A program made the position numbers and the translations under genes. A DNA stretch of 64,000 nucleotides from Hyalangium minutum. GTDB lineage: Bacteria; Myxococcota; Myxococcia; Myxococcales; Myxococcaceae. Positions within the stretch are counted from its first letter, which is position 1. Every line of letters begins with the position of its first letter. The notes beneath the pieces were generated by a model. That model was given only the letters and a program-made list of their open reading frames with translations, did not search any database and had not been told where the DNA came from. Location of the stretch: NCBI RefSeq assembly GCF_000737315.1, contig NZ_JMCB01000009.1, positions 248,001 through 312,000 on the forward strand, written 5' to 3'. Positions 2,581 through 47,981 of this stretch are shown here, in pieces.

Positions 2581-5500
2581 ATGCCCCAGCGTGCAGGTTA
2601 CACGTTCCACGAGACGCTCCACGAGAGCACGCGCTCCATGCTCATCCGGGCCACTCGGCTGCGCGATTCACTCCCCGTCATCCTCAAGCTCCCGGGCGGG
2701 GACTACCTGGAGCGGCGCCGGACGCTGGAGATCCACCGCGAGCACGCCATCGCCCGCCGCGTGGAGGGCGAGGGCATCATCCGCGTGCTGGGGGTTGAGG
2801 ACCTGACCGACCGGGTGGCGCTGGTTCTGGAGGACTTCGGAGGCCGCTCGCTGCGGCACCTGCTGGATGAGCGCGGCCCGTTGGATGTGGAAACGTTCCT
2901 GGACTACGCGCTGCGCATCAGCGCGGCCCTGGGGCACATCCACCGAGCGGGCGTCATCCACAAGGACATCAAGCCGCAGAACATCATCGCCAACCCGAAC
3001 ACGGGGATGGTGAAGATCGCCGACTTCTCCATCTCCGTGGCCATCGCAGTGGAGGCGGTGAGCCCGGACAGCCCCACGTTCCTGACGGGGACGCTGGCGT
3101 ACATGGCGCCGGAGCAGACGGGACGCATGAACCGCGGGGTGGACTACCGCGCGGACTTCTACGCACTGGGCGCCACCTTCTTCGAGCTGCTGACGAACCG
3201 CCGGCCCTTCGAGTCCACCGAGCCGCTCGAGCTGCTCCACGCACACGTGGCGCAGGTGGCGCCCTCCCCTCGGGAGATCATCCCCTCCATCCCCGAGCCT
3301 GTGTCCGCCATCGTCGTCAAGCTGCTGGCCAAGGATCCGGACGCGCGCTACCAGAGCGCGTGGGGGCTCATCTCGGATCTGGAGGAGTGCCAGCGCCGCG
3401 TGAAGGCGAAGACACCCCTCACCTCCTTCCCGCTCGGAATCCTCGACCGGACGGTGCAGTTCCGGCTGCCGCAGGGGCTCTACGGCCGGGCGGCGGATGT
3501 GGAGCAGTTGGCCGCCGCGCACGCCAAGGCTGCCTTGGGCCGAGGGGAGTTGCTGCTCATCTCGGGCTCGGCGGGCATCGGCAAGTCCTCGCTCGTCAAC
3601 GAGCTGCACCGGGTGACGGCTGCGAGCCGTGGCCGCTTCACCTCGGGCAAGTGCGATCAGATCAACCGAGGCGTGCCCTTCGACGCCGTCCATCAGGCGC
3701 TGCGGCAGTTGGTGAAGCAGGCGCTCGCCGAGGGCGAGGCGGAGGCGGAGGCGGCGCGCAAGCAACTGGACGCGGCGCTGGGGGTGAACACCGCAGTGCT
3801 CGTCGAGGCCGTGCCGGAGATGCGCTCGCTGCTGGGCGATCAGCCTCCGTCGGCTCCCCTGCCCGCCGCCGAGTCCAAGAACCGTCTGCACCGGGTGCTG
3901 CTCAAGGCGCTGGAGGCCTTCGCCACCGCCGAGCGCCCACTGGTGGTGTTCCTGGACGATCTGCAGTGGGCGGACGTGGCCACGCTGTCGCTGCTCCAAG
4001 AGCTGGTGCGCGATCCGGATTGCCTGTACCTGCTACCGGTGGGGACCTACCGAGACACCGAGATGCCCTCGTCTCACCCGCTCGCGCTGGCCATGGACGA
4101 GCTGCGCGCCACCCACACGCCCGTGCACGAGCTGCACCTGGGGCCACTGGCTCCCGAGGATGTGGCGAGAATGGTGCGCGAGGCCACAGGCGCGGACACG
4201 GGGCGGGCGCTGGGGCTGGGCCACCTCATCCACTCGCGCACGGGCGGCAACCCCTTCTCCATCCGCGAGTTCCTCCGCTTCCTGCACGATCAGCAGCTGA
4301 TCCAGTTCAACACGCGCGCCAGCCGGTGGGAGTGGGATCTGGCGAAAATCGAGGCGCGGGAGATCCCCAGCGACATCGCCGGGATGATGGCGGACGAGCT
4401 GCGGCGCCTGTCGCCGGAGACGTGCGATCTGCTGCAGCTGGCCGCCTGCCTGGGCGTGGTGTTCAGCTTCCGCGATCTCATGGTGGTACACGGGGCGTCG
4501 TCCCGGGACACGGCGAAGACGCTGTGGAGCGCATTGGAGCAGGGCTTCGTGCTGCCGCTGAGCAAGGACTACCTGCTGCTGGATCCGGAGGGCGGCACGC
4601 CGCTGCTGGCAGATCTGGAGGTGTCCTTCCGCTTCCTGCATGACCGGGTGCGCCAGGCGGCGTACTCGCTGCGGCCCGCACCCGAGCGCGCCGAGCGCCA
4701 CACGCAGGTGGGCCTGCGGCTGCTGGAGGACGCACGGGCCACGGCGACGCTGGAGGAACGGGCCTTCGTCATCCTGCCGCACCTGGCGTACGCGCCGGAG
4801 AAGATCGAGCCGCTCGCGCTGCGGATGGACCTGGCGGACATCCACCTGAGGGCGGGGCGCCGGGCGAAGGCGTCTGGCGCCTACAAGACGGCCTGCGAGC
4901 TGTTCCGGGCGGGCAATACGCTGCTGGGGGCCTCGGCGTGGGAGACGGAGTACGACCGGGCCTTCACGCTCCAGTTGGAGCTGGCCGAGTCCCATTACCT
5001 GGCGAGCGAGCTGGATGCGGCGTCTGCGGGCTTCTCCACGCTGATGAAGCAGGCGCGCACGCCCGCGCAGAAGGCGACCGTCATCGCGATGCAGGCCAAC
5101 CTGGCGTCGCTCACCAGCCAGCACACGGAGGCGATCCGGGTGGGGCTGGAGGGGCTGCGGCTGCTCGGGGTGGAGATCCCCACCACGGTGGGCCAGGCGG
5201 AGATTGGGGCGGAGATCGGCGCGGTGATGCAGTTGCTGGGGGGCCGCAAGCCCTCGGAGCTGCTGGCGCTGCCGAAGATGAAGGATCCAAACGTGGAGCT
5301 GTCGATCGGCCTGCTGGCCGCGATCGCCGCGTCCGCGTACATGGCGGACCAGGGGCTGTTCGCGCTGCTGGTGCTGCGGATCGTCCGGCTCTCGCTGGAG
5401 CACGGTAACAGCCGGCTGTCCTCGTTCGGCTACGTCATCTACGGGGTGCTGCTGGCGGCGGCGCTGGATGATCCCGGGACGGGCCGGGAGTTTGGCCAGC

Positions 5501-7992
5501 TGGCGGTGGAGCTGTCAGCGCGCTTCCGGGATCCGATGCTGCACGCGCGAGTGCGCTACCTGCGGGCGGGGCTGATTGACCAGTGGACGCGCGGGGCCCG
5601 AGCAGGCGTGGCGGAGCTGACCGAGGCGTACAAGGGGCTGATGGAGAGCGGGGACTGGCTCTACGCGGGGCACTGCATCACCGTGCGGCTCTGGCGGCGG
5701 GTGGCGGTGGGAGATCCGCTGCCGGAGATCCTGAACGAGAACCGGCGGTTCATCGAGTTCATCGAGGCGAAGAAGGATCCGGACTCGCTGCAGATGTTCC
5801 TGAGCACGCACCGGACGCTGCTGGCGCTGATGGGCGAGGAGGCGCCGCCGGTGGCTCCGGCCACCACTGCGGGGCACACGGCACAGGCCTACGTGTATCT
5901 GGCGGCGGCCGAGCGGCACTTCCTGATGCGGCAACCAGAGGAAGCGCTGGCGAAGGCGGAAGAGACGGTACCGCTGCTGCCGTTCATCTCGGGCCTCTTC
6001 CACGTGGCCACGCATGCGTTCTACCACGCAATGAGCGCGGCGGCGGTGTACGGGGAGGCGAGCGCGGAGCGGAAGGAGGCGCTGCTGCAGGTGATGGAGC
6101 AGCACCGTGCGTCGTTGGAAAAGTACGCGAGCCGGTGCCCCGAGAATTTCTCGCCACACCACCGGCTGGTGAGCGCGGAGCTTCACCGGCTGAAGGGGCA
6201 AGATCCCGAGGCGCTGGCCGAGTACGAGCGTGCCGTCGCGGCGGCGCGGGCCAGCGAGTTCCTGGGGGTGGAAGCGATCGCGTGCGAGCAGGCCTTCCGG
6301 TTCTTGCAGGCGGAGGGCCGTCACTTGCAGGCCTCAGCATACCTGCTCGAGGCGCTCTACGCGTACGAGCGTTGGGGGGCCACGGCAAAGGCGCGGCTGC
6401 TTCAGGCCGAGCAGTCCAACCATCTGCTCTCTCACGGAAGCGCGCTGCGGCGCTGGGATGGCAAGCCCCGGCCGACGACGGGCTCGACGCACCCCACGCT
6501 GCAAACGGGGGGCAGCTCGACACACCAGACGACGTCGGACTCGATGGCCGAGGCGCTGGACATGACGTCGGCGATGAAGGCATCGCAGGCGATCTCCAGC
6601 GAGATCTTGTTCCCGCAGCTGGTGGCGAACCTGATCCACGTGGTGATGGAGAGTGCGGGGGCGCAGCGGGGCGTGCTGGTGCTGCGGCGAGGCCAGGAGT
6701 TCTTCGTCGAGGCCACGGGGGAGATCAGCAACCGGGAGAACGCGACCGAGAAGGAAGCCGAGCCCCTGGCGCAGAGCAAGGTGCTCTGCCACGGCATCGT
6801 GAGCCAGGTGCTGCAGAGCGGCGCGCATGCGCTGCTGGATGACGTGCTGGCAACGGATCCATGGCGCACCGATCCGTACGTGGTGGAGCACAAGGTGCGG
6901 TCGGTGATGTGCTCGCCGATCCGGCACCGCGGGCAGGTGCTGGGGCTGTTCTATCTGGAGAACAACCTGACGTCGGGGGCGTTCAACACGAACCGGCTGA
7001 AGATGATCGAGATGCTGACGTCGCAGGCGGCGATCTCGATCGAGAACGCGGAGCTGTACCGGCGGCTCGAGGATTACAGCCACACCCTGGAGGATCGGGT
7101 GGCGGACCGGACGGCGGAGCTGCACAGCAAGAACGCAGAGCTACACCGGGCGGTGGAGACGCTGAAGGCGATGCAGCAGCAGGTCGTGACACAGGAGAAG
7201 CTGGCGTCGCTGGGAGCGCTGACGGCGGGTATCGCGCACGAGCTGAAGAACCCATTGAACTTCGTGAGCAACTTCGCGGTGCTGTCGAACGAGCGGGTGC
7301 GCGAGCTGCGGGAGGTGGTGCCCACGGCGCAGCCGATGACGCCCATCCAGAAGCAGGACTTCGAGGACATCCTGAGCGAGCTGGAGCTGAACACGCGGAA
7401 GATCCGCGAGCATGGCCAGCGGGCGGTGGGGATCATCGACGGGATGCTGCAGCACGCACGGGGCGGGAAGCGTGGGGACAAGCGGTCGACGAACGTAAAC
7501 CAGCTGGTGGAGGAGGCAGTGCGGCTGGTGCACCACGGGCTGAAGGCGAAGAGCACGCGGCGCAACGTGGTGATCGAGACATCGTTCGACGCGACGGTGC
7601 CGGAAGTGAACCTGGTCTCGGACGACATCCGGCGGGTGGTGCTGAACCTGGTGGACAACGCGTGCTACGCGGCGAGCGATAAGGCGCAGCAGCCGGGGAG
7701 CAAGGAAGAAGCGCGGGTCCGGGTAACGACGCGCTGGACGGGGAAGGACGTGGAGATCCGGGTACGGGACAACGGGAAGGGGATCTCGGCGACACAGAAG
7801 GAGAAGCTCTTCACACCGTTCTTCACGACGAAGCCCGCGGGAGAAGGCACGGGCCTAGGGTTGTCGATCAGCCACGAGATCGTGGTGGTGTCCCTGGGCG
7901 GCAAGCTGTCGGTGGAGTCCGAGGAGGGCAAGTACGCGGAGTTCATCGTGATGCTGCCGGGAGAGGGGCTGCGCGCCAGCCCTCCGGTCTGA
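2581..7992 (+). CDS. Hybrid Ser/Thr kinase - AAA ATPase - helical region - GAF - histidine kinase (1803 aa)
   Basis: [20 protein letters not shown]; Walker A GSAGIGKS and Walker B [11 protein letters not shown]; GAF ([21 protein letters not shown]); H-box [10 protein letters not shown], N-box NLVDNA, DNGKGI, FTTK, GTGLGL. Confidence 0.93.
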   Translation: [1803 protein letters not shown]

Positions 7993-8012: not shown

Positions 8013-10166
8013 TCAGAAGTCGCTCTCCCCGGCAATGTGCTCCGGGTACCCCGAGATGGCCTGTGAGGCCTGGAGCCCGGACATCACCGCCGCCTCCACG
8101 CAGCCGCAGTTGAGCCCCGTCAGCGTCCAGTCTCCCGCCAGATACAGGTTCGGATAGTCCGAGTCGTGTGAGCCCAACCGCGCGGCCGTCGAGCCCGGCG
8201 GGGACATCACGTACCGCTCGCTCGGATCGATGTTCGCCCGCCAGAACTGGCTGTCGAACCGTGCCACGCCCTTCGCCCCGCTCGGAGCCACCAGCAGTTC
8301 CCAGTCCAGCGCCGTGGGGTTGTACTGCGTCGCCTTCGGCCACAGCGTCCCGATCCACTCCCGCAGCCACTGCACCGAGAGCTGCTTCAGCCGCTCGTGC
8401 TCCCGCCGCGGGAAGTCATGGTCCGTGAACGGAGGAATCACCGGCGCGTCCACCAGCGGCGCCGTGAAGTACGCGATGTCCTTCACCGTCCCCCCCGCCC
8501 ACTTCTCCCGAGGAATCACCTGGGCCATGTCCGCGTACGTGTTCAGCGGCTCGGCGTAGCCCGTCATCACTGTCGGGTCTTCCTTCCACCCCAGCTCCGC
8601 GAGCGACTTCGACAGCCACAGCTGCACGCCCAGCGTCTGGTTCGTCTGCAGCGCCTCGACCATCCGCTTCCACCGGTCGCTGTGCGCCATCAACTCCGAG
8701 GCCACATACGGGAACGCCCCCAGTGAGATCCCCATCACCAGCACGTCGTAGTCCCGGCCCCTCTCCAGCGTCACCGGCTGCTCGCCCTTCCACGGCCGCG
8801 CCCAGGACGACTCCAGGTTGATCCCAGACGCCTCCAGCTCCTGACCATCCACGATCTGATCGTACTGCGGCCGATCCGGCCAGCAGGGCAGCCCCAGCAC
8901 ATCCACCAGCGGCTGATACCCCGCCGCCGGGTTCTTCAGCTCCACCTGCCGCGTCATCTCCACCCGGTCCACATTCCGCGTGAGCGAATGCACGCGCAGC
9001 TGGTTCACCTTGTGGAAAAAGTGGAACTGAACCCCGCGCCGCTTGAGCACCTCGTACAGGGGCGTGAAGACCACGTCGCCCATGCCCGCGCGCATCTTGT
9101 AGAAGACCGCTCCCTTGTAGTTCAGCGCCATGCGCACCATGAAGCGCGCCGCCACCCCTGCCGCGAGCAGCTGCCGGTGCGGGTGGCCCTGAACGTACGC
9201 GAACAGCAGCTGGTACATCCCCTTCACCAGCGGCGAGCGGTACAGCGTGAAGTCACTGGCCCCGTGGCGCTTCAGCCACGCCCGGAAGTCCTCGCCGTCG
9301 ATGGCATTGAAGCCCGTGCGCAGCACTCCATCCTTCAGCACCCCGCGCGCCAGCACGAGCCCCAGCTCCAGGATCGCCCAGATCTTCCGGACCGAGCTGT
9401 TCTCCAGATTCCGCGTGAACCGCGCGGACAGCCGCGCCAGCACCTCCTCCAGCAGCCACACGAGCGCCTCGACCTGCCCCGGATCCTGCTCCCCCGGGAA
9501 CCGCGGCAACCGAGCCGCCAGCAGCTGCGCCAGTTGCAGCGTCCGCCCAATGCCCGGCACACCGGCCTTCGGGAAGATCGACAGCCCCAGCGCCCGCAGC
9601 ACACCCTCCACTCGCGATGGCAGCGCATCCGGAGCCGGCGTCGCCGCCGCGAGCCCCGCTCCCGGCGCCTGGTTCAGCAGGTTCAGCAGCGCCTGCAGCC
9701 CGCGCTCCAGATACGTGACGAGCGTCGGCAGATCTTCCCCCTCCCCCGTCCCCGGCTCTTCCGAGTTGGTGGCGAACGGAAAATCCCAGTCCCCCCACCC
9801 TGTCGCCGTGCGCTCGAAGAGCGTAATCAGCGACTGCTTCTTGAAGGCCTCGTCCACCGTGGCGAGCGGCGCACCCTTGGGCCGCCCCAGCTCCTGGTAG
9901 GCCTGGCGCATCACCCGGAACGCGTTCTCGTAGTGCCCCATCCACACATGGAGGCCGTGCTCCTCGATGCGCTGGCTCGCGTCCTTGTTCCGCCCGCTGG
10001 CGCCCTTGCCTCCGAGCCGCCACCCCAAGCTGTAGAGGCTGATCTCGTAGTGGTCCTGCCAGCCGGGGTAGTTCGTCAGCCCAAACGCGGCCGTCATCGC
10101 GCCCACGCCGCCCCCCAAGATGACGATCTTGCGCTTCCGTCCCCGCACCTGCTGTTCCGTGCTCAT
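8013..10166 (-). CDS. FAD/NAD(P)-binding oxidoreductase, amine-oxidase/carotenoid-desaturase-like superfamily (717 aa)
   Basis: N-terminal Rossmann GGGVGAMTAA, LGWRLGGKGASGR, EEHGLHVWMGHYENAF; C-terminal NLYLAGDW...GCVEAAVMSG. Confidence 0.85.
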   Translation of the reverse strand: MSTEQQVRGRKRKIVILGGGVGAMTAAFGLTNYPGWQDHYEISLYSLGWRLGGKGASGRNKDASQRIEEHGLHVWMGHYENAFRVMRQAYQELGRPKGAPLATVDEAFKKQSLITLFERTATGWGDWDFPFATNSEEPGTGEGEDLPTLVTYLERGLQALLNLLNQAPGAGLAAATPAPDALPSRVEGVLRALGLSIFPKAGVPGIGRTLQLAQLLAARLPRFPGEQDPGQVEALVWLLEEVLARLSARFTRNLENSSVRKIWAILELGLVLARGVLKDGVLRTGFNAIDGEDFRAWLKRHGASDFTLYRSPLVKGMYQLLFAYVQGHPHRQLLAAGVAARFMVRMALNYKGAVFYKMRAGMGDVVFTPLYEVLKRRGVQFHFFHKVNQLRVHSLTRNVDRVEMTRQVELKNPAAGYQPLVDVLGLPCWPDRPQYDQIVDGQELEASGINLESSWARPWKGEQPVTLERGRDYDVLVMGISLGAFPYVASELMAHSDRWKRMVEALQTNQTLGVQLWLSKSLAELGWKEDPTVMTGYAEPLNTYADMAQVIPREKWAGGTVKDIAYFTAPLVDAPVIPPFTDHDFPRREHERLKQLSVQWLREWIGTLWPKATQYNPTALDWELLVAPSGAKGVARFDSQFWRANIDPSERYVMSPPGSTAARLGSHDSDYPNLYLAGDWTLTGLNCGCVEAAVMSGLQASQAISGYPEHIAGESDF

Positions 10167-10178
10167 GGATGTCGTGCC

Positions 10179-12275
10179 TCAGCGGTACCAGAACGCTTCG
10201 CCAGCGATGCGCAGCGGCTTGCCCGTGAGTGCACGGAACGCCTGCATGCCGGAGATGACGGCGCCCTCGGCCGCTCCGATGTAGAAGCTGTTGTCGACCC
10301 AATCGCCACACAGGGTCAGGTTCTCGAAGCCCGTGGCGCCCGGCTGGATCCTCGCCTCGCGAGTCCCCGGCAGCGCCAGCGTGTAGCGCTCGCCCGGATC
10401 CACGTTGGCGCGCCAGTACTGGGTGTCGAAGCGCGCCTCCCCAGACCCCTCGTTCGACGGCACCAGCAGCGTCCAGTCAAACACCGGCGGGTTGTTCGGC
10501 TGGGTCGCCTTGGGCCACAGCACGCCGATGTCATTGCGCAGAAAGTTCAGAGCGTTCTGCCGGGCCAGTTCCTTGCGGAGCGCCGGGTAGCCGTGCTCGG
10601 TGGGCGGAGGCGCCACCGTGGGGCCGGGCAGCGGGCCACAGAAGTACGCCACCGTGAGCGGCGCATTGGGCTGGGCCCAGCCCTCGCGGGGCAGCAGGCT
10701 CGTCATGTCCGCCCAGGTGTCGAGCGGCTCGACGTACGCGGTGAGCATGGGGCTCCCCACCGTCCACCCCAGCGCCCGCTGATCCTTCGAGAGCCACAGC
10801 TGGAAGGCCTGCGTCTCGATGGAGGCCACCTCCTGCACCATCTTCCGCCACGCCGGGCTGAGCTCCAGCAGCGTCGGGCACAGGAAGCGCACCGAGCCCA
10901 CCGGGATGCCGAACACCACCTCGTCGAAGTCCTTGCCCACCTCGAGCACGCGCTCGGCCACGTTCTTCCAAGGCGTGTAGAAGGACTCCAGATCGATGTT
11001 CTCCCGGAGCAGCTGCTCACCCTGGACGATCTGATCGTAGTTCGGCTTGTCCGGCCAGCACGGCAGGTTCTTCACGGAGACGAAGGGGTCATACCCCGCC
11101 GCCGGCTCCTTCAGGTCCACCTGCCGGCCGATCCGCAGCCGGGTAACACGAGGCTTCTTCCCAGGACCGCCCTCGGCGATCACTTCTTCGACGCGGTGGA
11201 AGAACTCGAAGCGCACACCGTTCTTCCGGCACACCTCGTAGAGCGGCGCGAAGATGACGTCGCCCATGGAGGCGGTGAACTCGTAGGCCACGTGCCCCTG
11301 GTACGTGAGGCAGATGCGCATCACGGCTCGCAGCGCGCTCCCGGCCGCGATCAGCTGGCGATCCGGATCACCATCCACCATGGACATGGCCGCGTCGTAG
11401 ATGACGCGCGCCAGTGCCGAGCGCAGCGTCAGCGGGTTCGCGCCGTGCCTGGCCAGCCACGCGCGGTAGTCCTGCCCATCCAGGGCATTGAAGCCGTTCG
11501 TGAGGACCTTGTCGGCCAGGATGCCCACGAGGTTGGCGATGAGGAAGTCCAGCCCCACACCCAGCTGGTACAGCAGGAAGTTGGACTCGATCAGGTACGC
11601 CACCTGGTTCCACAGCCAGCGCAGGAAGGTCCGGATCGCCGCCAGGATCGCATCCGCGATGCCCTCGAGCGACACCGCCAACGCCTGCCCCTGCGCTGCC
11701 AGGAGCGCCTGGGAGTGCGCCTCCGCGAGCAGCCGCTCGCCCTCCGCCATGTCCACGCCCTGGGCGACGAGCGAGCCCCCCACTGGCGTCACCAGAGAGA
11801 CGTGCGCCTTCACTTTCCCGAGCAGCTGCTGGGCCACCCGGAGCACCGCCTCGATGATCTCCCAGGTGGTGGGTTCGCGGGTGCTCTCGCCCGGTAGGAG
11901 CGCGTTGGTGGCAAACGGCACCATCCAGCGCTCCCAGCGCCCCTGGAAGAAGTCCTGCATGGCGAGCAAGTCTCTGCCCCGGAAGGCCTCGTCGAAGGTG
12001 GCCAGCGGCATCGTCTTCGGCCGAGCCATCTCCCGGTACGCGTCACGCATCAGCGCGAAGGCGTTCTCATAGAAGCCCCAGAAGATGTGGAGCCCGTGCT
12101 CCTGGATGCGCCCATGAGGGCCCCGGCCGCTGGCGCCCTTGCCGCCCAGGCGCCAGCCCAGCTGGAACACCGTCACGTCGTACTCGGCCCGCAGCTCCGG
12201 AGTCCGGGACAGGTAATACGCCGTGGTCATCGCGGCCGCGCCGCCCCCGAGCACCGCCACCCGCTTCTTCGTCAT
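10179..12275 (-). CDS. FAD/NAD(P)-binding oxidoreductase, paralogue of 8013-10166 (698 aa)
   Basis: GGGAAAMTTA, LGWRLGGKGASGR, EHGLHIFWGFYENAF, LPCWPDKPNYDQIVQG, NLTLCGDW...GAAEGAVISG. Confidence 0.85.
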   Translation of the reverse strand: MTKKRVAVLGGGAAAMTTAYYLSRTPELRAEYDVTVFQLGWRLGGKGASGRGPHGRIQEHGLHIFWGFYENAFALMRDAYREMARPKTMPLATFDEAFRGRDLLAMQDFFQGRWERWMVPFATNALLPGESTREPTTWEIIEAVLRVAQQLLGKVKAHVSLVTPVGGSLVAQGVDMAEGERLLAEAHSQALLAAQGQALAVSLEGIADAILAAIRTFLRWLWNQVAYLIESNFLLYQLGVGLDFLIANLVGILADKVLTNGFNALDGQDYRAWLARHGANPLTLRSALARVIYDAAMSMVDGDPDRQLIAAGSALRAVMRICLTYQGHVAYEFTASMGDVIFAPLYEVCRKNGVRFEFFHRVEEVIAEGGPGKKPRVTRLRIGRQVDLKEPAAGYDPFVSVKNLPCWPDKPNYDQIVQGEQLLRENIDLESFYTPWKNVAERVLEVGKDFDEVVFGIPVGSVRFLCPTLLELSPAWRKMVQEVASIETQAFQLWLSKDQRALGWTVGSPMLTAYVEPLDTWADMTSLLPREGWAQPNAPLTVAYFCGPLPGPTVAPPPTEHGYPALRKELARQNALNFLRNDIGVLWPKATQPNNPPVFDWTLLVPSNEGSGEARFDTQYWRANVDPGERYTLALPGTREARIQPGATGFENLTLCGDWVDNSFYIGAAEGAVISGMQAFRALTGKPLRIAGEAFWYR

Positions 12276-13258
12276 GAACCGCTCCAGAGGAGGTGACCTT
12301 CGTTGAGGCGGAAGTCGAACTGGATCTGCAGCCCTCCGGGAATGAAGAGCTGGCCACGCGAGTCCACCTCCAGCCCCAGCATCTCGGCGAGGGGCTGGGT
12401 GGCCAGCGGCTCGATCTTCAGGCGGAAGCGCCGCAGCAGCAGGCGCAGGCTCCGCAGGTGGATCTGATCCGCCTCCGCGCCCACGATCGCCTGGTAGCAG
12501 GCCCCCGTGCTGTTGCCCACGGCTCGGAACTGTTTGAGGAACACCATCGGCAGCGTGGGCCGCAGCAGGAACTCGATGATCCGCGCGCCGAACTCGAAGT
12601 TGAAGTCCAGCAGCTGGCCCAGCTCATCCCTCAGCACGCCGAGCTTCTGCAGCAGCTCGTCTCCCAGCAACAGGCCCAGCTCGCCATGAGCGAAGGGCTC
12701 GCCATCCGCGCGCTCCAGCGAGAGCACCCGGGCCACCTGGGCCTCCGAGTCCCGGCCGAACGTGCGGTAGGCCAGCGAGGAGATCTCGAACGCGCCGGCG
12801 CCCTGCCCCGAGCCCGGCATGAGCACGGTGGACTGCTGCTTGGGGAAGCCATACAGCTCGCGGCCCCCAGCCACCGCCCACGGGTTGTCCGAGTAGATGA
12901 ACGGGACGAACAGCTCCACCTTCTTGCACAGCTCGTCCGGGCCGTGCTTCTTGTAGTCGCTCACGGCGATCCAGAAGGTGGCCTCGCGCTCGGAGGTGTG
13001 GCCCCAGTCCTGGAAGCCCTCGGCACCCGAGGAGAGCCGGCCCACATGCTGGAACGTAAGCATCACGAACGGCAGCCGGGGGCGGTAGTCCACCGCACCT
13101 CCCGACGGCCCGTTGAGGAACTCGTCACACAGCTCCTGGAGCTTCGACTGCTGGCCTTTCAGGAAGAAGATGTACTGCGTGACGTCCTGGCAGAGACTCG
13201 GCGGGGGGAAGACTTGGAGGGACGGGCTATCGATGTACTTCCTCCCCGGGGGAGTCAT
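12272..13258 (-). CDS. Acetoacetate decarboxylase-like superfamily protein (328 aa)
   Basis: AVAGGRELYGFPK Schiff-base-lysine motif; C-terminal VFLKQFRAV...CYQAIV; ATGA overlap with the downstream gene. Confidence 0.8.
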   Translation of the reverse strand: MTPPGRKYIDSPSLQVFPPPSLCQDVTQYIFFLKGQQSKLQELCDEFLNGPSGGAVDYRPRLPFVMLTFQHVGRLSSGAEGFQDWGHTSEREATFWIAVSDYKKHGPDELCKKVELFVPFIYSDNPWAVAGGRELYGFPKQQSTVLMPGSGQGAGAFEISSLAYRTFGRDSEAQVARVLSLERADGEPFAHGELGLLLGDELLQKLGVLRDELGQLLDFNFEFGARIIEFLLRPTLPMVFLKQFRAVGNSTGACYQAIVGAEADQIHLRSLRLLLRRFRLKIEPLATQPLAEMLGLEVDSRGQLFIPGGLQIQFDFRLNEGHLLWSGS

Positions 13259-14064
13259 CAGTTCTCCTTCTTGCCTCGCCAGTTGAGCGGCTTGGGCATC
13301 ACGAACCGCGCCTTGGGCAAGTATTGCACCACCTGCGGCGTGAAGCGCATGTCCACAAGATCCTTGCCAAGCACGCTGTCGCTGGACAGAGCGAACTCAT
13401 CCCCCTCGCCAAAGAGGCGAATGTTCGTCTCGAACTCGAAGTGCATCACGTTGCGCGTCTGGAATACCTCCTTGGGGGTAACGAACCCGAAGGTGGCCTT
13501 CATGGGCGCAAGCGGGCTGTCCGGCAGCCGCACCCGGCCCATGGCCACGCGCTTGCCGTCGCACGACACGTTGAACCGGCACACGCCTCCGGAGAACTGA
13601 ATGTCCACCGGCTGCGGCGTGGGGTGCTTGGCGTGCCCATGCACCTCGCGGCCGAAGTCGATGGGCACCTGCTCGTTGAGGATCAGCTTGTGGCAGTAGA
13701 TGGTGGCGTCCGGGAGCGAGCCCGCCTGCAGCAGCTCCATGGGCGAGTGGGCCACGGCCTCCAGCGTCTTGAGCGAGGCGGGGAAGCTGAGGATGAACTC
13801 CTTGTACGGCCCGCACGAGGTGTCGTGGTAGTCGGCGATCCACAGGGCCGCGGCGCACTTGCCTCCCCCCACGGAGACCGGCTGGTAGCGCTGCCCGGCC
13901 ATCAATCGGCGCACAGCCTCCAGGTCCGCAGGCCCGTGCAGCACCAGGAAATCCACCGAGCGGCACGTGTAGGGGATCTGGCTCACCACCCCCGAGGACA
14001 GCTCGTACTCCTCGGTGGGGGGATAGGCATCGAACAGGGACTGGCCAGGCTTTTGCGTCTGCAT
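13258..14064 (-). CDS. Acetoacetate decarboxylase-like superfamily protein (268 aa)
   Basis: IADYHDTSCGPYKEF and PIDFGREVHGHAK resemble the ADC GPYxE and GRExxGxPK motifs; TGATG overlap with the next gene. Confidence 0.7.
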   Translation of the reverse strand: MQTQKPGQSLFDAYPPTEEYELSSGVVSQIPYTCRSVDFLVLHGPADLEAVRRLMAGQRYQPVSVGGGKCAAALWIADYHDTSCGPYKEFILSFPASLKTLEAVAHSPMELLQAGSLPDATIYCHKLILNEQVPIDFGREVHGHAKHPTPQPVDIQFSGGVCRFNVSCDGKRVAMGRVRLPDSPLAPMKATFGFVTPKEVFQTRNVMHFEFETNIRLFGEGDEFALSSDSVLGKDLVDMRFTPQVVQYLPKARFVMPKPLNWRGKKEN

Positions 14065-14208
14065 TGGGGGAACCTCTCGACCGCGCCGAAGTGCGCCAGA
14101 GCACTCTAGCTTTGCTCCGCGCCGCGCCTCGATAGGTCCCCAGGGCGCAGCGCTTGAGCGTTCCCCGACAGCCCGGCCGAAGTTTCTCGGAATCCGAGGG
14201 TCTCCGCT

Positions 14209-16212
14209 CTACCAGGCGCTCTGCGCGGAGAGCGCGGCCCCGATCTGAGGAGTCTCCTGGTTCGAGTTGCTCGACGAGGAGGAGGAAGGCGCCCGCGAGG
14301 AGCTGAGGAAGCCGGTGCGGCGGTTCACCACGTCGTGCACGGCCATGGGCTCGCGGAGGCTGGGCAGCGTGCGCTCGCCGGCGGGGCGGCACTCGAAGTC
14401 CAGCCGCACGCGCTGGCACATGCGCTCGCTGATCAGCACCTCGCCGCTGACGGCCATGGCGGACAAGCGCACGGCGTTGTCCACGGGCAGGCCCACCATG
14501 GCGTAGTCCAGGCGTCCCAGCTCCGGCCCACCAATGCCGCCCACCACCACTTCACCCGAGTCCACGCCGATGCAGATGCCCTGAGCATACGGAGACTGCT
14601 CACCGGCCTTGTCGACCAGCGACTTGAGCTGCTGCCGGACGCCCATGCACGCATCCAGCGCCTGGCGCAGGTGCTCCTCGCCACGGAACACCACCAGCGC
14701 CGAGTCCCCCATCAGCCGGTCCACCACCCCACCCCGCGAGGTGAGCTCCGGGATGACGGCCTGGAAGTGCTCGTTGAGCCGCTGGATGACGGCGTCCGGC
14801 GGCAGCTGGCGCACCAGGGCGGTGAAGTCCGGGATGCGCAGGTAGACGACGGTGGCGTCGGCCCGCTCGCCCACGAGCGCGCCCGGACCCTGCGTCAGCG
14901 GGCGCAGGCGCTCCAACACGGTGCTCTGGACGAACATGCGCAGCAGGGCGTTCTCCTCGATGGAGCGCATCATCTGCCGGGACTCGGCCACGTGCTTGAG
15001 CGTCTTGCTCAGCGTGGCCTCCAGATCCTGGAAGTCCAGCGGCTTGGTGAGGAAGTCGTGCGCGCCGCGGTTCATGGCGATGCGGATGTTGGCCATGTCG
15101 CTGTAGGCCGAGACGATGATGACCTTGACCAGCGGGTTCACCTCGCCCACGCGGCTCAGGAAGGTGAGCCCGTCCATGCGCGGCATGTTGATGTCGGTGA
15201 GGACGACGTCGATATCCGGGTGCTGGCGCAGCTTCTCCAGGGCGTCCTCGCCGTCCGAGGCGAAGACGAACTGGTAGACGTTGTCGCGGATCTGCCGGCG
15301 GAACGCCTGGCGCATCATCAGCTCCACGTCCGGCTCATCATCCGCCACGAGGATCTTCGCGGCTTGGGGCCGGGCGGCCTGGACGATGGAGGCAAACGTG
15401 GTGGCCAGTTCCTGGGCGGACTGGAAGCGCTTCTCGGGATCCGCGTTCAGGGCGCGGGTGAAGAAGCGGTCCAGTTCGGGGCCCAGCTCGGGCACGTAGG
15501 TGGAGGGCGCGATGTCCGGCGGGTGGAAGCTGCCGTTGAGCAGCCCGCCCACGGACTCCAGCGGGAACGGGTACTTGCCGGTGAGCGCCCGGTAGGTCAC
15601 CACGGAGATGGACCAGAGATCGCTGCGGTGATCGAGCGACAAGTCCCCGCGGATCTGCTCGGGGCTCATGTAGCGCAGCGTGCCCACCATGCCGTCCATG
15701 GAGTCCGGCGTCACCTCAGGGGTGGGCGACTTGCGGCGCACCAGACCGAAGTCGAGGATCTTCACCACCTCCTGGGCGTCGATGCGGGTCAGGAAGAGGT
15801 TGGCCGGCTTCAGATCGCGGTGGATGATCCCTGCGGTGTGCGCGGCCGTCAGCGCGCGGGACACCTGGGTGAGGATCGAGGCCACCTGCGCGGGGGGCAG
15901 CTTCTCGCGGCGCTTGAGGCGCGTCTCCAGGTCCTCGCCCTCGAGCAACTCCATGACGATGAACGGCTCGTCCTTGTCGAAGCCGAAGTCATGGATCTGC
16001 ACCACGTTGGGGTGGCGGAACTGGGCGATGGCCTTCGCCTCTTTCTCGAACTGGAGCTTGGCGCCCTCGGTCGAGAGTCGCTGCGACGTGGTGAGCTTGA
16101 TCGCCACGTGCCGCTGAAGCTGTGGATCGAGCGCCGCCCAGATGGCACCCATGCCACCCCCGGCGATCTTCCGCTCAAGGAGGTACCTACCCCCGACCTG
16201 GCGTCCGGACAT
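14209..16212 (-). CDS. Ser/Thr kinase - receiver - class III nucleotide cyclase-like fusion
   Basis: Likely start ATG 16212 (MSGRQVGGRY; ORF extends to 16296). Kinase: IAGGGMG, VAIK, HRDLKPAN, DFG, MSPE. Receiver: ADDE, LTDINMP, FLTKP. Cyclase-like: DRLMGD, GICIGVDSGEVVVG. Confidence 0.9.
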   Translation of the reverse strand: MSGRQVGGRYLLERKIAGGGMGAIWAALDPQLQRHVAIKLTTSQRLSTEGAKLQFEKEAKAIAQFRHPNVVQIHDFGFDKDEPFIVMELLEGEDLETRLKRREKLPPAQVASILTQVSRALTAAHTAGIIHRDLKPANLFLTRIDAQEVVKILDFGLVRRKSPTPEVTPDSMDGMVGTLRYMSPEQIRGDLSLDHRSDLWSISVVTYRALTGKYPFPLESVGGLLNGSFHPPDIAPSTYVPELGPELDRFFTRALNADPEKRFQSAQELATTFASIVQAARPQAAKILVADDEPDVELMMRQAFRRQIRDNVYQFVFASDGEDALEKLRQHPDIDVVLTDINMPRMDGLTFLSRVGEVNPLVKVIIVSAYSDMANIRIAMNRGAHDFLTKPLDFQDLEATLSKTLKHVAESRQMMRSIEENALLRMFVQSTVLERLRPLTQGPGALVGERADATVVYLRIPDFTALVRQLPPDAVIQRLNEHFQAVIPELTSRGGVVDRLMGDSALVVFRGEEHLRQALDACMGVRQQLKSLVDKAGEQSPYAQGICIGVDSGEVVVGGIGGPELGRLDYAMVGLPVDNAVRLSAMAVSGEVLISERMCQRVRLDFECRPAGERTLPSLREPMAVHDVVNRRTGFLSSSRAPSSSSSSNSNQETPQIGAALSAQSAW

Positions 16213-16438
16213 GGACCACTCACCCGTGCGAGAGCCGGGGAAGTTCCCCGGCGGTGTGATGGAACGGCTGCACGCTCCCCTGTGGAGCAAGTTCATATCA
16301 CCAGCGGCTCGCTCCGTCGCTCTGGGTCCCCTTCACCCCTTGGGGTGAGGTTCGCCCCGGCCGCATCTTTTCATGACGCAGCGCATCCGGCCACCGCCCG
16401 GGGTAGAAAAGGCCTCTACTGCTGGAGGCCTTGAGATC

Positions 16439-17503
16439 ATGCCGATGTCCCGCCTGCGCCGCACCCTGCTCACCGTGATGGGGACACTCTTGATGCTGGG
16501 AGTGACGGGAGGCGTCGTGGGCTGCCACGCCTTCTCCGCGCCCGTGTACCGAGGACCCAAGTCCGACCACTTCAACGGCGAGCAGTTCGTGAACCAAGAG
16601 TCGAGGGAGCGGCGGATGACGTTCCTGGAGTGGCAGCGCACCCGGACCCCGGGGACGTGGGCGGAGTGGACGGATGCGGCTCCGGGCACGCCTCCTCCTC
16701 GCCGCGTGGCACGGGGCGCACTGCGTGTCACCTTCGTGAACCACGCCACCACGCTGCTGCAGTTGGACGGGGTGAACGTGCTGACGGACCCCATCTGGTC
16801 GGAGCGCTGCAGCCCGGTATCCTTCGTAGGGCCCAAGCGCGTGCGTCCGCCGGGCCTGCGCTTCGAGGACCTGCCGCCCATCGACGCGGTGATCCTCAGC
16901 CACAACCACTATGACCACATGGACGTGCCGACGCTGAAGCGGCTCGCGGAGCGATACCCGAACGTGCGCTTCTTCGCGGGGCTGGGGAACAAGGCGTTCC
17001 TGGACTCGAAGGGACTGCCGAACGTGACGGAGCTGGACTGGTGGCAGGAGGTGACACTGGCGCCGGAGGTGAAGCTGGTGAGCACGCCCGCGCACCACTT
17101 CTCCAACCGGGGGCTGAGCGATCGGGACGGCACGCTGTGGACGAGCTACGTGCTGCAGGGTCCCTCGGGGGTGACGTACTTCGCGGGGGACACCGGCTAC
17201 GGCAAGCACTTCAAGCAGGTGCGCGAGAAGTTCGGCCCGGTGAAGCTGGCGGTGCTGCCCATCGGCGCCTACAAGCCCGAGGCCTTCATGGAGGTGGTCC
17301 ACGTCTCGCCCACCGAGACGGTGCAGGCCAGCGTGGACCTGGAGGCGAAGGTGAACGTGCCCATGCACTTCGGCACCTTCAGGCTCGCGGATGACGGGCA
17401 GGAGGAGCCCGTCACCGAGCTGCGCCGGGTACTCGACGCCCGGCCCGAGCCCAAGCCGGACTTCTGGGTGCTCGGCTTCGGCGAGGGCCGGGACGTGCCC
17501 TGA
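16439..17503 (+). CDS. MBL-fold metallo-hydrolase (RomA/NAPE-PLD-like), probably exported
   Basis: LTDPIWSERCSP, SHNHYDH, PAHHFS, FAGDTGY, PIGAY, PMHFGTF; hydrophobic N-terminus ending VVGC. Start uncertain (16373-16445). Confidence 0.88.
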   Translation: MPMSRLRRTLLTVMGTLLMLGVTGGVVGCHAFSAPVYRGPKSDHFNGEQFVNQESRERRMTFLEWQRTRTPGTWAEWTDAAPGTPPPRRVARGALRVTFVNHATTLLQLDGVNVLTDPIWSERCSPVSFVGPKRVRPPGLRFEDLPPIDAVILSHNHYDHMDVPTLKRLAERYPNVRFFAGLGNKAFLDSKGLPNVTELDWWQEVTLAPEVKLVSTPAHHFSNRGLSDRDGTLWTSYVLQGPSGVTYFAGDTGYGKHFKQVREKFGPVKLAVLPIGAYKPEAFMEVVHVSPTETVQASVDLEAKVNVPMHFGTFRLADDGQEEPVTELRRVLDARPEPKPDFWVLGFGEGRDVP

Positions 17504-17509
17504 GCGGGC

Positions 17510-19699
17510 TCACGCCTTGACGTCGAGGCGCTGCGGCGGCTCTCCGCCCGAGGACTGAGCGGAGTGCCCAGGGCCGTTGCCACCGGCGGGCTTGTCCTCC
17601 TGCGCGGGCTTCTCGGCGGACTGCTTCTCCAGCATGGACTTGGAGAGGGCGTGCTCGTCAGCGGCGCGGCGGGCCTCGCGCTCCTTATAGCGGCGGATGG
17701 CGGGGGCCATGATCTCGCCAATGAGCGTGCGGTAGTCCATCCCGGCGCCCTGGGCGATGAGCACCAGATCGCTCCAGCCCGGGGTGAGGCCCGGTAGCGG
17801 GTTGCACTCGATGAAGAAGATGCGCCCCTTGTCATCCATGCGGAAGTCGATGCGCGCCACGTCGCGGCACCCCAGCGCCATGAACGAGCCACGGGCCGCC
17901 GCGCGCAGCTTCTCCAGCAGCGCCGGCTCGATCTTCGCGGGCGCGTCGTAGCGGATGCGATCGGTCCAGTCGAGCTTGTGCTGGAAGCTGTAGACGGGGT
18001 TCTTCTCCTCCTTGTCGAGGAAGACGATCTCCATGGGCGGCAGCACGCGCGGGCGGCGCTCGCCGAGCAGGCCCACGGTGAACTCGCGCCCGCCGATGTA
18101 CTCCTCGATGAGGGCCGGCTGCTGGTACTTGCCGACGATCTCCTTCACCACGTCGCGCAGCTCCGCCTCGCTGTGGCAGACACTCTTGCTCACCACGCCC
18201 TTGGAGGAGCCCTCGGCCACGGGCTTCACCATGAGCGGGAAGCCGGTGAAGTCCTTGTTGAGGCGCTCCTTGCCGGTGTGCATCAGCTGGAAGGTGGGCG
18301 TGTGGATGCCGGCCTGGCGGACGATCTTCTTGGCCAGGGCCTTGTCCAGCGCGAGCGAGAGCGTGGCCGGATCGCTGCCCGTGTACGGGATGTCGAGCAG
18401 CTCCAGCATGGCCGGCACTTGGCTCTCGCGGTTGCGGCCCTTGAAGCCCTCGGCGATGTTGAAGACGATGTCCACCGGCGTGCTGGCCAGCACGTTGGGC
18501 AGCTCCTGGTTGGCCTCGAGATCAATCACCTCGTGGCCCCAAGAGGCGATGGCCTCGCGGATGGCCTGGAGCGTGGCGGGCGAGTCATACTCGGCCTCGC
18601 TGTCCTCGGAGGCATCCACGGTGGGCTTCACGCGCTTGACGTTGTAGGTGAAGCCCACGCGCAGCGGGCCGCTCTTGCGCGCCGGCTTGCCCTGGCGCCG
18701 CGCCGAGTCCTTGATCTTGTACCGCTTGGCGGCGCTCTGGATGATGCTGCCGATGACGCCATCCATGTGCAGGCCCTCGAGCTCCGCGGAGGCGTAGATG
18801 CCGGCTCCGGGCTCCAGGCTGGGCAGCGCGTTGATCTCCAGGAAGTACGGCACGCCCGCGTCGCTGAGGCGGAAGTCGATCCGGCCCAGGTCGCGGCAGT
18901 CGAGCACCTTGAAGATGGTCTGCGCCATCTTGCGCACGTCCTCGGCCGTCTTCGCGGGGATCTGGGCCGGCGCGCGCACGCTGACGGACTTGAAGTTCTT
19001 CACCTTCAGGTCGTAGTCGTAGATGGAGTACTTGCGGCTCGAGGTGGCCGCCGGATCGATGATGTACTCCACGGGGGTGAGCACGCCGTCGAAGTCATTG
19101 TCCACGGCGGCCAGGAAGGGCACCGTCAAGTCACGCCCACCGATGTACTCCTCCACGAGGACGCCGGCCGGGTACTTGGCCAGGGCCTGGGCCACCTTGG
19201 TGCGCACCTCGTCCAGCGTCTCCGCGATGGAGTCCTGGGTGATGCCCTTGGAGGAGCCCTCGAAGTTCGGCTTGACGATGACGGGGAAGCGCAGGTTCTC
19301 CGCGGTGAGCTCGCTGAGCTTCTCCACGTACTGCCAGCCCGGGGTACGGATGCCGTGCTTGGCGAGGATCAGCTTGGTGAGCTGCTTGTCCAGGGTGACG
19401 GCCAGGGCATACGCGTCGCTGGCGGTGTAGTGGAAGCCGAGCTCCTCGAAGAGGGCCGGATAGAAGGCCTCGCGGAAGCGGCCGCGGCGGCCCTCGGCGG
19501 TGTTGAAGATGAGATCGGGGCTGTAGGCCTCGAGCCGGGCGACGGTGCGCGAGGCGGGGCCGCTGACCTCGAAGCGCTCCAGCCGGTGGCCGAGCCGCTC
19601 GATGGCGCCCGCCAGGGCGTTCACCGTCTCCTGGGTGTCGAACTCCGCTTCCTCTTCCGAGTCCGAGAGCCTGAGGTTGTACGTCAGCGCGATGCGCAC
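17510..19699 (-). CDS. Tandem (two-domain) D-Ala-D-Ala-ligase-like ATP-grasp protein
   Basis: Likely GTG start at 19699 after GGGGGAAG (VRIALTYNLRLSDSEEEAEFD). Two copies of the fold: VKPNFEGSSKGI/EINALPSL and VKPVAEGSSKGV/ECNPLPGL. Confidence 0.88.
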   Translation of the reverse strand: MRIALTYNLRLSDSEEEAEFDTQETVNALAGAIERLGHRLERFEVSGPASRTVARLEAYSPDLIFNTAEGRRGRFREAFYPALFEELGFHYTASDAYALAVTLDKQLTKLILAKHGIRTPGWQYVEKLSELTAENLRFPVIVKPNFEGSSKGITQDSIAETLDEVRTKVAQALAKYPAGVLVEEYIGGRDLTVPFLAAVDNDFDGVLTPVEYIIDPAATSSRKYSIYDYDLKVKNFKSVSVRAPAQIPAKTAEDVRKMAQTIFKVLDCRDLGRIDFRLSDAGVPYFLEINALPSLEPGAGIYASAELEGLHMDGVIGSIIQSAAKRYKIKDSARRQGKPARKSGPLRVGFTYNVKRVKPTVDASEDSEAEYDSPATLQAIREAIASWGHEVIDLEANQELPNVLASTPVDIVFNIAEGFKGRNRESQVPAMLELLDIPYTGSDPATLSLALDKALAKKIVRQAGIHTPTFQLMHTGKERLNKDFTGFPLMVKPVAEGSSKGVVSKSVCHSEAELRDVVKEIVGKYQQPALIEEYIGGREFTVGLLGERRPRVLPPMEIVFLDKEEKNPVYSFQHKLDWTDRIRYDAPAKIEPALLEKLRAAARGSFMALGCRDVARIDFRMDDKGRIFFIECNPLPGLTPGWSDLVLIAQGAGMDYRTLIGEIMAPAIRRYKEREARRAADEHALSKSMLEKQSAEKPAQEDKPAGGNGPGHSAQSSGGEPPQRLDVKA

Positions 19700-20295
19700 G
19701 GCTTCCCCCTTCTTGCCCGCCTGAGCGAGCGGCCGCGGCGAATCTTCGCCGCGGACAAGAGTCGTCCCGGGGCGCGCTGATGCGCCACGGGGGTGCGGGC
19801 GGCAACGGATGCGCCCGCGACAACCTTCCCATCCACCACCTGCGTCTGGGCCCACATGTCCCCCAGCCGCCAGCCAAGCGGATCCTTGAGGACGCGCCAT
19901 CCCTCCAGCCCCCCGATGACGAGGAGCCCCCCGGCGCCCGCCACCAGGCCCAGGCCCTCGGGCATCATCCCCAGGAGGATGATCAGCGCGAGCGGGGCAT
20001 TGCGGAGAGCGCTGTCGCGGTGGCGCGCGGCCGTGTGCGTAGGCAGGTAGATGACCTTGACGCCGAAGATGCGCTTGCCGGGGCTCTGGCCATGGAGCAT
20101 GCCGTCGGCCAGGAGCACGAAGAGCAGCGCCACCACGGAGCCGGCGGCGCCGCAGACGACCCACAGGCCCCAGGCCACGGCGATGTCCACCAGCCGTGCG
20201 CCCAGGCGCAGCAGGAGCGCGGCCTTGGGATACGGCGAGCCGGACAGAATCTCTCCCTCGTGGACGAGGCGCAGCGCGCGAGGACCGGAGTTCAC
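19684..20295 (-). CDS. RDD family membrane protein
   Basis: RLGARLVD, hydrophobic helices, GQSPGKRIFGVKV, RLGDMWAQTQVV; overlaps both neighbours. Confidence 0.85.
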   Translation of the reverse strand: MNSGPRALRLVHEGEILSGSPYPKAALLLRLGARLVDIAVAWGLWVVCGAAGSVVALLFVLLADGMLHGQSPGKRIFGVKVIYLPTHTAARHRDSALRNAPLALIILLGMMPEGLGLVAGAGGLLVIGGLEGWRVLKDPLGWRLGDMWAQTQVVDGKVVAGASVAARTPVAHQRAPGRLLSAAKIRRGRSLRRARRGKPCASR

Positions 20296-47919: not shown

Positions 47920-47981
47920 GGCCGGTGGGGCTCCGGGGGGCAAAGGCAGCCGGGGGAGCTACCTGAGCCCTCCGAAGAGTC

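Follow-up and report, generated by a model that had tools for sequence, protein, structure and literature searches.

The window analysed here, a 64,000-nucleotide stretch of the Hyalangium minutum genome (NCBI RefSeq assembly GCF_000737315.1, contig NZ_JMCB01000009.1, positions 248,001 to 312,000), carries on its minus strand a cluster of four genes: two encode proteins with the acetoacetate decarboxylase (ADC) fold, ADC1 (13258-14064, 268 aa) and ADC2 (12272-13258, 328 aa), and two encode flavin adenine dinucleotide (FAD) enzymes, Flav1 (10179-12275, 698 aa) and its paralogue Flav2 (8013-10166, 717 aa). Our analysis revealed that the object of interest at this locus is the unit of ADC2 and a Flav enzyme, taken together with a neighbouring sensor protein, rather than the four-gene operon. 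The conserved unit, ADC2 plus flavoenzyme, was found in at least 13 phyla.

The conserved unit and its signalling neighbours

The comparison covers the window and 85 fetched loci (86 in total) from at least 13 phyla. The genome loci fetched were the best 80 by Flav score of at least 593 present in species-representative genomes, and the percentages given below describe that subset. These best 80 represent Myxococcota, Cyanobacteriota, Spirochaetota, Pseudomonadota, Acidobacteriota, Gemmatimonadota, Chloroflexota, Bacteroidota, Verrucomicrobiota, Nitrospirota and Margulisiibacteriota, plus an unclassified Limnocylindria genome; plasmid or chromid copies further add Azospirillum and a Mycobacterium. 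Relatives of Flav1 share 65-85% identity with it in Hyalangium and Stigmatella and about 40% in cyanobacteria, Leptospira and many other groups. Among the organisms possessing the module are Azospirillum brasilense, Nostoc/Anabaena, Stigmatella/Hyalangium, Janthinobacterium, Pseudoalteromonas luteoviolacea and pathogenic Leptospira.

A census of ADC2 and Flav was made with domain-limited profiles on the 85 loci and the window. ADC2 is fused to the N-terminus of Flav in 22 of the 86 loci, is encoded by a separate gene directly upstream of Flav on the same strand in 32, lies directly downstream in two and nearby in four, and is absent from the fetched stretch in 26; adjacent genes thus strongly favour one order, with ADC2 first. 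The fused proteins (P0023, P0031, P0057, P0087, P0099) are about 1,030-1,090 aa long and combine the PF06314 domain with the flavoenzyme; Janthinobacterium and Duganella offer examples of about 1,050 aa. ADC1 adjoins Flav only in the window, in a metagenome-assembled genome (MAG) of Archangiaceae (L004) and in Hyalangium gracile (L084), the latter two being its closest relatives and sharing its whole arrangement; ADC2 and Flav thus make up the conserved core, which Archangiaceae have elaborated into the four-gene layout. For this reason we rejected the four genes as a conserved unit, which is how the initial annotation had treated them; of the linkage that it proposed to look for in other genomes, the tetrad was not conserved and the ADC2-Flav core was. 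Where ADC2 is missing, the locus often has additional flavoenzymes of the HpnE/PDS type or between two and four Flav paralogues. Five such loci, three from Acidobacteriaceae (L016, L019, L024) and two from Gemmatimonadota (L017, L021), have three to four tandem Flav paralogues, and these arrays adjoin a Pkinase-TPR or AAA_16 protein.

For the linkage to sensors, a STAND protein (recognised by its AAA_16 domain) was counted within 2.5 kb of the enzyme unit and a 7TMR-DISM receptor within 3 kb. Over all loci, a STAND protein was found in 44 and a 7TMR-DISM receptor, in the form of a hybrid His kinase or a GGDEF protein, in 22. Of the 69 loci whose flanks extend for 3 kb or more on each side, 55 (80%) have one or the other beside the unit, and another kinase is adjacent in five of the rest. 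The STAND proteins tend to be close, 33 of the 47 matches in the 10-kb flanks on either side lying within 300 bp of the enzyme unit. In the window this partner is a giant dual kinase of 1,803 aa (2581-7992, plus strand), for which Pfam detects a Ser/Thr kinase domain (Pkinase, residues 50-258), the AAA_16 (STAND) module (300-480), GAF (1347-1487), HisKA (1544-1624) and HATPase_c (1680-1793), and which also has helical repeats. It is the sole STAND match in the 64 kb, its gene is convergent with that of Flav2, the two stop codons being 20 bp apart, and over 1,549 aa it shares 27% identity with its positional counterpart in Leptospira. The unit of Leptospira, Anabaena and Microcoleus is adjoined by a Ser/Thr kinase-AAA_16-GAF protein of 1,690-1,800 aa with a His kinase or PP2C domain, and giant kinases with this architecture also neighbour the unit in Spirochaetota, Cyanobacteriota, Myxococcota, Bacteroidota, Verrucomicrobiota and Pseudomonadota. 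On the Mycobacterium plasmid a cyclase-STAND gene even overlaps Flav. What the STAND partners have in common is the AAA_16 module and helical repeats of the MalT type, while both ends vary: at the N-terminus there is a Ser/Thr kinase, SAM-cyclase or cyclase domain, and the output domain is of the His kinase, PP2C, cyclase or receiver kind. Adjacency of enzyme and sensor is conserved across lineages, as it is in signal synthase/receptor modules.

The enzyme unit, in other words, sits beside signalling proteins. The cluster had initially been viewed as a self-contained pathway, which it is not, since the partner with the highest conservation, a signalling protein, is encoded outside the four genes. 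That no regulator is encoded among these four, as was also stated, is literally true; however, conserved signalling genes flank them on both sides. Apart from the giant kinase, these are a gene for a 695-aa protein with Ser/Thr kinase, receiver and adenylate/guanylate cyclase domains according to Pfam (14209-16296, minus strand), located 144 bp upstream of ADC1, and a Ser/Thr kinase gene truncated by the left end of the window (1-2430, minus strand), whose kinase domain was matched by phmmer at 1e-27 and which is transcribed divergently from the giant kinase gene. L004 and L084 show synteny for both genes. The H. gracile locus has, between Flav2 and the giant kinase, an additional gene for a 473-aa HisKA/HATPase protein (14264-15685 of L084), absent from the window; the signalling complement of the locus therefore varies even within the family. 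A plus-strand open reading frame (ORF) overlapping the truncated kinase gene (382-2532, 716 aa) has no Pfam match and is probably a high-GC artefact.

As to previously described proteins of this kind, the cyanobacterial dual kinases of the cbSTKIII/HstK family are defined by a Ser/Thr kinase at the N-terminus, a His kinase at the C-terminus and one or more GAF domains (PMC2176072). The 1,803-aa kinase of the window has this layout, and cyanobacterial members adjoin the enzyme unit; in other lineages, unlike in cbSTKIII/HstK, the output is swapped for PP2C, a cyclase or a receiver. For these proteins the survey gives expression data only, and a keyword search of it returned no mention of the linkage to an enzyme unit (PMC2176072).

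Folds and motifs of the four enzymes

The positions and junctions of the four same-strand genes, annotated initially with TGATG and ATGA overlaps and a 12-bp gap, were read directly and are as had been stated: AAC-TGATG-ACT at the ADC1/ADC2 junction, TTC-ATGA-CG at the ADC2 stop and Flav1 start, and a 12-bp spacer between Flav1 and Flav2. Of 8,000 candidates that were scored for Flav1, 2,172 are homologues at E <= 1e-5; 169 homologues were obtained for ADC2 (E <= 0.001) and 30 for ADC1. That all four ORFs have many conserved homologues shows that they are genuine genes and not chance ORFs of high-GC DNA (the G+C content of the window is about 68%). A plus-strand ORF antisense to Flav1 and Flav2 (8988-11897, 969 aa) was considered and rejected as a composition artefact; antisense ORFs of this sort cluster together across high-GC loci. 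The 144-bp intergenic region 5' of ADC1 (14065-14208) may contain the promoter of the operon. Between 7.5 and 17 kb of the window, no sigma-70 or terminator consensus was found, nor any credible Rfam element, the sole match there being to a snoRNA family with an E-value of 0.99.

ADC2, the conserved component, passes the gathering threshold of the Pfam ADC family PF06314 (29.8 bits) marginally, with 33.6 bits and partial coverage of the model. Its AlphaFold2 (AF2) model (pLDDT 88.8) retrieved with Foldseek 24 PDB chains at E <= 0.001, every one of the ADC family, the top matches being the ADC structures 3bgt, 3c8w and 3bh2, the aldolase-dehydratase Sbi00515, MppR and Swit_4259. The GRExYGFPK motif of the ADC2 family profile aligned to GFPKK of 4zbo/6eej and to GRELWGFPKK of 3bgt. 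Within it, K140, invariant in 59 sequences, falls on K122 of 4zbo/6eej and K116 of 3bgt, the residues that form the Schiff base in those enzymes, in line with PDB titles like 'Schiff base complex with pyruvate'. Fold and alignment both indicate that ADC2 is an ADC-fold protein retaining the lysine at the Schiff-base position, and the initial placement of the pair in the ADC superfamily has stood, with PF06314 passed and the lysine of the catalytic motif kept. Like characterised members of the superfamily (ADC, Sbi00515, MppR, Swit_4259), ADC2 is predicted to form a beta-cone (TMt 0.6-0.76) and contains GRE-x-x-G-x-P-K. Unlike them, it is about 70 residues longer, has a helical insert at 202-231, does not conserve the second lysine of the PKK pair and, besides R133, has the extra invariant residues K242, Q243, R245 and Q256; its identity to these proteins is 12-15%. 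A true acetoacetate decarboxylase it does not appear to be, since it scores only 15.4 bits with NF002614 against a cut-off of 150. The PDB sequence search with the ADC2 profile matched the catalytic-loop segment and nothing more.

Two unusual homologues of ADC2 deserve mention. One of them, P0214, has an N-terminal extension (RRRFLHL...GC) resembling a Tat or lipoprotein signal, and from this some members of the family may be exported. The other is a 1,192-aa protein from a Nitrospiraceae MAG (L080, 14178-17756, plus strand), in which about 550 residues of unknown sequence separate the two motifs conserved in ADC2, namely the GRE..K loop and KQ.RD...ACYQA. We considered it as an ADC-Flav fusion; hhalign was negative in this respect, and the protein is an ADC2-like one with a very large insert.

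ADC1, a lineage-specific accessory, also exceeds the PF06314 threshold marginally (39.2 bits, partial model coverage). Nineteen homologues keep its GRE..G..K motif without variation (G138, R139, E140, G143, K146), and K146 shares the spacing of the ADC2 motif, the equivalence of the two lysines being by motif only. The search of ADC1 against the true-ADC model NF002614 and the sequence search against the PDB gave no match. The family cut-off is missed by both ADC1 and ADC2, and the name of acetoacetate decarboxylase was rejected for the two of them. Nor are they close paralogues: BLASTP finds no similarity between them and the hhalign probability is just 12%, which suggests that they are related only at the level of the superfamily. 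The two-plus-two paralogue layout proposed initially holds for one half, Flav1 and Flav2 being 41% identical end to end, and fails for the ADC half, so that there is only one real pair of paralogues. The ADC1 family comprises 402 cluster representatives in a full HMMER search, and homologues of ADC1 at 44-56% identity sit in unrelated gene clusters. In three metagenome representatives of about 960-995 aa (P0374, P0385, P0391) an ADC1-like domain is placed C-terminally to a different flavoenzyme of the amine-oxidase type, the domain order being opposite to that of the ADC2-Flav fusions; judging by these proteins, the partnership of an ADC fold with a flavoenzyme has arisen at least twice.

Both flavoenzymes match NAD_binding_8 of Pfam, and Flav2 also matches PF01593, with 30.5 bits confined to its last 50 or so residues. 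The N-terminal GxGxxG and the C-terminal GD-x6-E-x-A-x-x-SG FAD motifs are present and invariant in 80 Flav sequences. In the alignment of these sequences 45 columns are invariant, and all 45 are kept by Flav2 as well as by Flav1, on which grounds both paralogues look functional. The AF2 model of Flav1, built from the 80-sequence alignment, is of high quality (pLDDT 92.4, pTM 0.93); its best Foldseek match in the PDB is rice phytoene desaturase (PDS) 5mog (E 4e-17, TMt 0.72, 13% identity), followed by nicotine oxidoreductase (NicA2), LAAO, MAO, protoporphyrinogen oxidase (PPOX) and LSD1; the Foldseek probability is 1.0 for 5mog, NicA2, LAAO, MAO and PPOX alike. The model places Flav1 in the PDS/amine-oxidase structural superfamily with the two-domain GR2 FAD fold, and motifs and Foldseek agree in this with the PDS/HpnE/amine-oxidase assignment made initially. 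The GLHI(F/W)xGxYxN motif of Flav resembles that of PDS/ZDS. The Flav enzymes share with PDS, ZDS and HpnE the N-terminal dinucleotide and C-terminal FAD motifs; unlike them, they are outside a carotenoid or hopanoid context, have about 230 extra residues relative to PDS, including an insert of about 120 aa with four long helices (137-254) that is variable in sequence across the family, and carry a nearly invariant Gln38 where the end of beta-2 is usually acidic.

Identification of Flav1 and Flav2 as HpnE, ZDS or PDS was rejected. The scores with the corresponding NCBIfam models (41 and 56, about 33, and 27 and 16 bits) are far below the cut-offs of 283, 622 and 569 bits, and the matches are limited to the N- or C-terminal FAD motifs. 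The PPOX and oleate hydratase equivalogs of NCBIfam are likewise far below cut-off, and the sequence search of Flav1 against the PDB returned nothing past the FAD motif. As every equivalog test failed, the proteins discussed should not, on their sequences, be named acetoacetate decarboxylase, HpnE or PDS. The neighbour-joining (NJ) tree of Flav domains is star-like, with Flav1 and Flav2 on different deep branches. In this rough tree the Gemmatimonadota loci L017 and L021 each have a Flav1-like and a Flav2-like member, which suggests that the two form an old paralogue set.

A possible signal-related function and its alternatives

Several neighbouring genes provide grounds to predict the nature of the substrate. 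A FadL/TodX outer-membrane channel is encoded directly beside Flav in six fetched loci, belonging to several orders, and in Azospirillum, and in five Alteromonadales loci a TonB-dependent receptor gene lies between Flav and the 7TMR-DISM kinase; an outer-membrane channel of one of these two kinds is a frequent neighbour of the unit in Gram-negative bacteria. A divergent squalene-synthase-like gene is part of the operon in three loci of one cyanobacterial clade, being located between ADC2 and Flav in Microcoleus; its product aligns to TIGR01559 over the full length, with 72-85 bits against a cut-off of 287. Extra HpnE/PDS-like flavoenzymes occur at L013 and L035, and a polyprenyl synthetase gene is found 5 kb from the unit on the Mycobacterium plasmid. 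These channels and neighbour genes and the PDS-like fold suggest that the substrate is hydrophobic and possibly isoprenoid-derived. All of these neighbour genes lie at loci other than the window, in which none of them is present. A biosynthetic cluster for carotenoids or hopanoids was considered and rejected, the squalene-synthase-like gene being limited to the three cyanobacterial loci. The initial guess of a lipid or isoprenoid substrate, possibly connected with a signal, is now better supported by the neighbourhood, namely by the sensors, FadL and the squalene-synthase-like gene. The failure to match a described pathway, admitted at that stage, has been borne out by the NCBIfam, PDB and literature searches.

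We suppose that the ADC2-Flav pair makes or converts a hydrophobic ligand that is read by the neighbouring sensor, a proposal to which we would give an even chance. The four genes of the window would in this case be an operon of small-molecule enzymes and form the enzymatic arm of a sensor module. ADC2 and Flav could perform two consecutive steps on one hydrophobic, probably isoprenoid- or lipid-derived, molecule bearing a carbonyl, one step being a flavin-dependent desaturation, oxidation or isomerisation and the other relying on lysine-iminium chemistry (decarboxylation, aldol/retro-aldol reaction or hydration). What the sensor next to the unit would read is the product or, alternatively, the removal of the substrate. 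In the window this sensor would be the 2581-7992 kinase, most likely acting through its helical-repeat or GAF region, and ADC1 and Flav2 may be Archangiaceae additions that extend or diversify the chemistry. The ligand could be made from a cellular precursor or converted from an imported compound, and which of these routes applies may differ by lineage. The same unit pairs with cytoplasmic STAND proteins and with membrane 7TM receptors, so that a diffusible ligand would be the simplest account.

Several points weigh against this proposal. Everything in it beyond fold, motifs and linkage is inference. A pure hydrocarbon isoprenoid would offer no carbonyl for the Schiff base, and the two halves of the chemical model would therefore be unconnected. 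ADC2 is not obligatory, since 26 of the 86 loci have Flav without it in the fetched stretch. In the window itself, no prenyl or squalene synthase was found, and the giant kinase, being convergent, is not co-transcribed with the operon. Finally, gene adjacency fits equally well with a sensor that regulates the enzymes.

In a broader version of the proposal, ADC2-Flav would be the synthase or converter of a previously unrecognised class of hydrophobic signals, with orphan STAND dual kinases and cyclases (of the HstK type) and some 7TMR-DISM proteins as cognate receptors in at least 13 phyla, Leptospira, Nostoc/Anabaena, myxobacteria, Azospirillum and Pseudoalteromonas among them; we advance this only tentatively, as a possibility that is somewhat doubtful. 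The arrangement is similar to CqsA/CqsS, RpfF/RpfC and LuxI/LuxR, in which an enzyme gene is conserved beside that of a ligand-gated sensor, and channels for hydrophobic molecules are found near the unit; the likeness to such synthase-receptor pairs is one of logic only. Unlike in those systems, the enzymes are unrelated to known autoinducer synthases and the receptors are STAND or 7TMR-DISM proteins.

The flavoprotein, with or without ADC2, could itself be the sensor, binding or turning over a metabolite or sensing redox state or oxygen, and signal by protein contact. MalY and Aes, enzymes that regulate the STAND protein MalT, are a model for such a mechanism, and the Flav unit is typically adjoined by a STAND protein with MalT-like helical repeats. 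The variable helical insert of Flav, absent from PDS, loosely recalls the tower of LSD1 (one of the Foldseek matches), an insert through which this protein of amine-oxidase fold binds a partner, and Flav-STAND pairs also occur without ADC2. However, the partners are structurally unrelated (STAND, 7TMR-DISM, Pkinase-TPR), and a shared ligand is more economical than one docking surface for all of them. The fusions, and the catalytic-type residues that are strictly conserved in ADC2, argue for real turnover, and the adjacent outer-membrane channels point to a molecule that moves. We therefore regard signalling by the flavoprotein itself as unlikely.

It is also conceivable that the signalling protein merely controls the expression or activity of a metabolic operon, the enzymes of which modify or degrade a membrane lipid, a carotenoid, a squalene-like compound or an imported hydrophobic nutrient; the enzymes would then be an output of the sensor and would not supply its input. 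PDS as the best structural match, HpnE, ZDS and PDS as the best NCBIfam matches, the squalene-synthase-like gene in the cyanobacterial operon, the adjacent FadL and TonB uptake channels and the presence of ADC1 homologues in clusters of acyl and lipid metabolism are all in line with it. Still, the equivalog scores are 5- to 20-fold under the cut-offs, no other carotenoid, hopanoid or beta-oxidation genes were found in the window or in most loci, and many of the partner outputs are second-messenger enzymes (GGDEF, cyclase) or PP2C phosphatases, not DNA-binding domains, which would be unusual for a dedicated catabolic regulator. These observations make control of a purely metabolic operon improbable in our opinion.

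As for a conflict or anti-phage system, in which the STAND protein would be the sensor and the flavoenzyme/ADC pair the effector making a toxic or abortive-infection metabolite, it is very improbable: STAND NTPases are indeed common as sensors in defence, integrases surround one Microcoleus locus together with an AcrVA2-like and a NACHT-WD40 gene, and plasmids or chromids carry the copies of Azospirillum and Mycobacterium, but PADLOC-DB 2.0 gives no match for the four enzymes and matches the kinases via the generic kinase domain only, the partners carry ordinary outputs (His kinase, cyclase, PP2C, GGDEF, receiver), 7TMR-DISM proteins are not defence components, and the position is conserved across Leptospira (L001, L012, L041), Hyalangium and related genomes, unlike that of variable defence islands.

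Returning to the ADC2-Flav pair as a source of a ligand for its neighbour, the joint action of an ADC-fold protein and a PDS-like flavoenzyme would, if true, be new enzymology, with no characterised precedent found: our searches turned up no characterised ADC-family member fused to or paired with a PDS-like flavoenzyme. No description of the ADC2-Flav-sensor module was found in the literature searched, which did not cover subscription-only papers. Bacteria with complex development or a versatile use of environments are rich in giant Ser/Thr-His dual kinases, in STAND cyclases and in 7TMR-DISM receptors; to our knowledge, few of the ligands of these proteins have been identified. A conserved and often fused enzyme unit beside such receptors is a testable handle on what they sense.

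Other genes of the window

Upstream of the kinase-receiver-cyclase gene lies a gene for an MBL-fold hydrolase (16373-17503, plus strand), which is syntenic with H. gracile (L084). It is followed by a gene for a 943-aa protein with two D-Ala-D-Ala-ligase/ATP-grasp modules (17510-20341, minus strand), the syntenic version of which in L084 is 727 aa long.

Further along, the window contains a gene for a 2,072-aa teneurin-like/RHS YD-shell protein (26500-32718, minus strand; TEN_NHL, TEN_YD-shell and RHS repeats). The G+C content of this stretch is 0.56-0.65 compared with about 0.68 for the window, and the gene looks like a horizontally acquired polymorphic-toxin locus. Beside it, in the same block of lower G+C, an 803-aa protein with Big_9/cadherin-like repeats is encoded (32820-35231, minus strand).

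The region of the window as a whole is rich in signalling genes. One of them encodes a CheA-like hybrid kinase with Hpt, HATPase, CheW and receiver domains (45610-47943, minus strand), and other receiver proteins are encoded further along.

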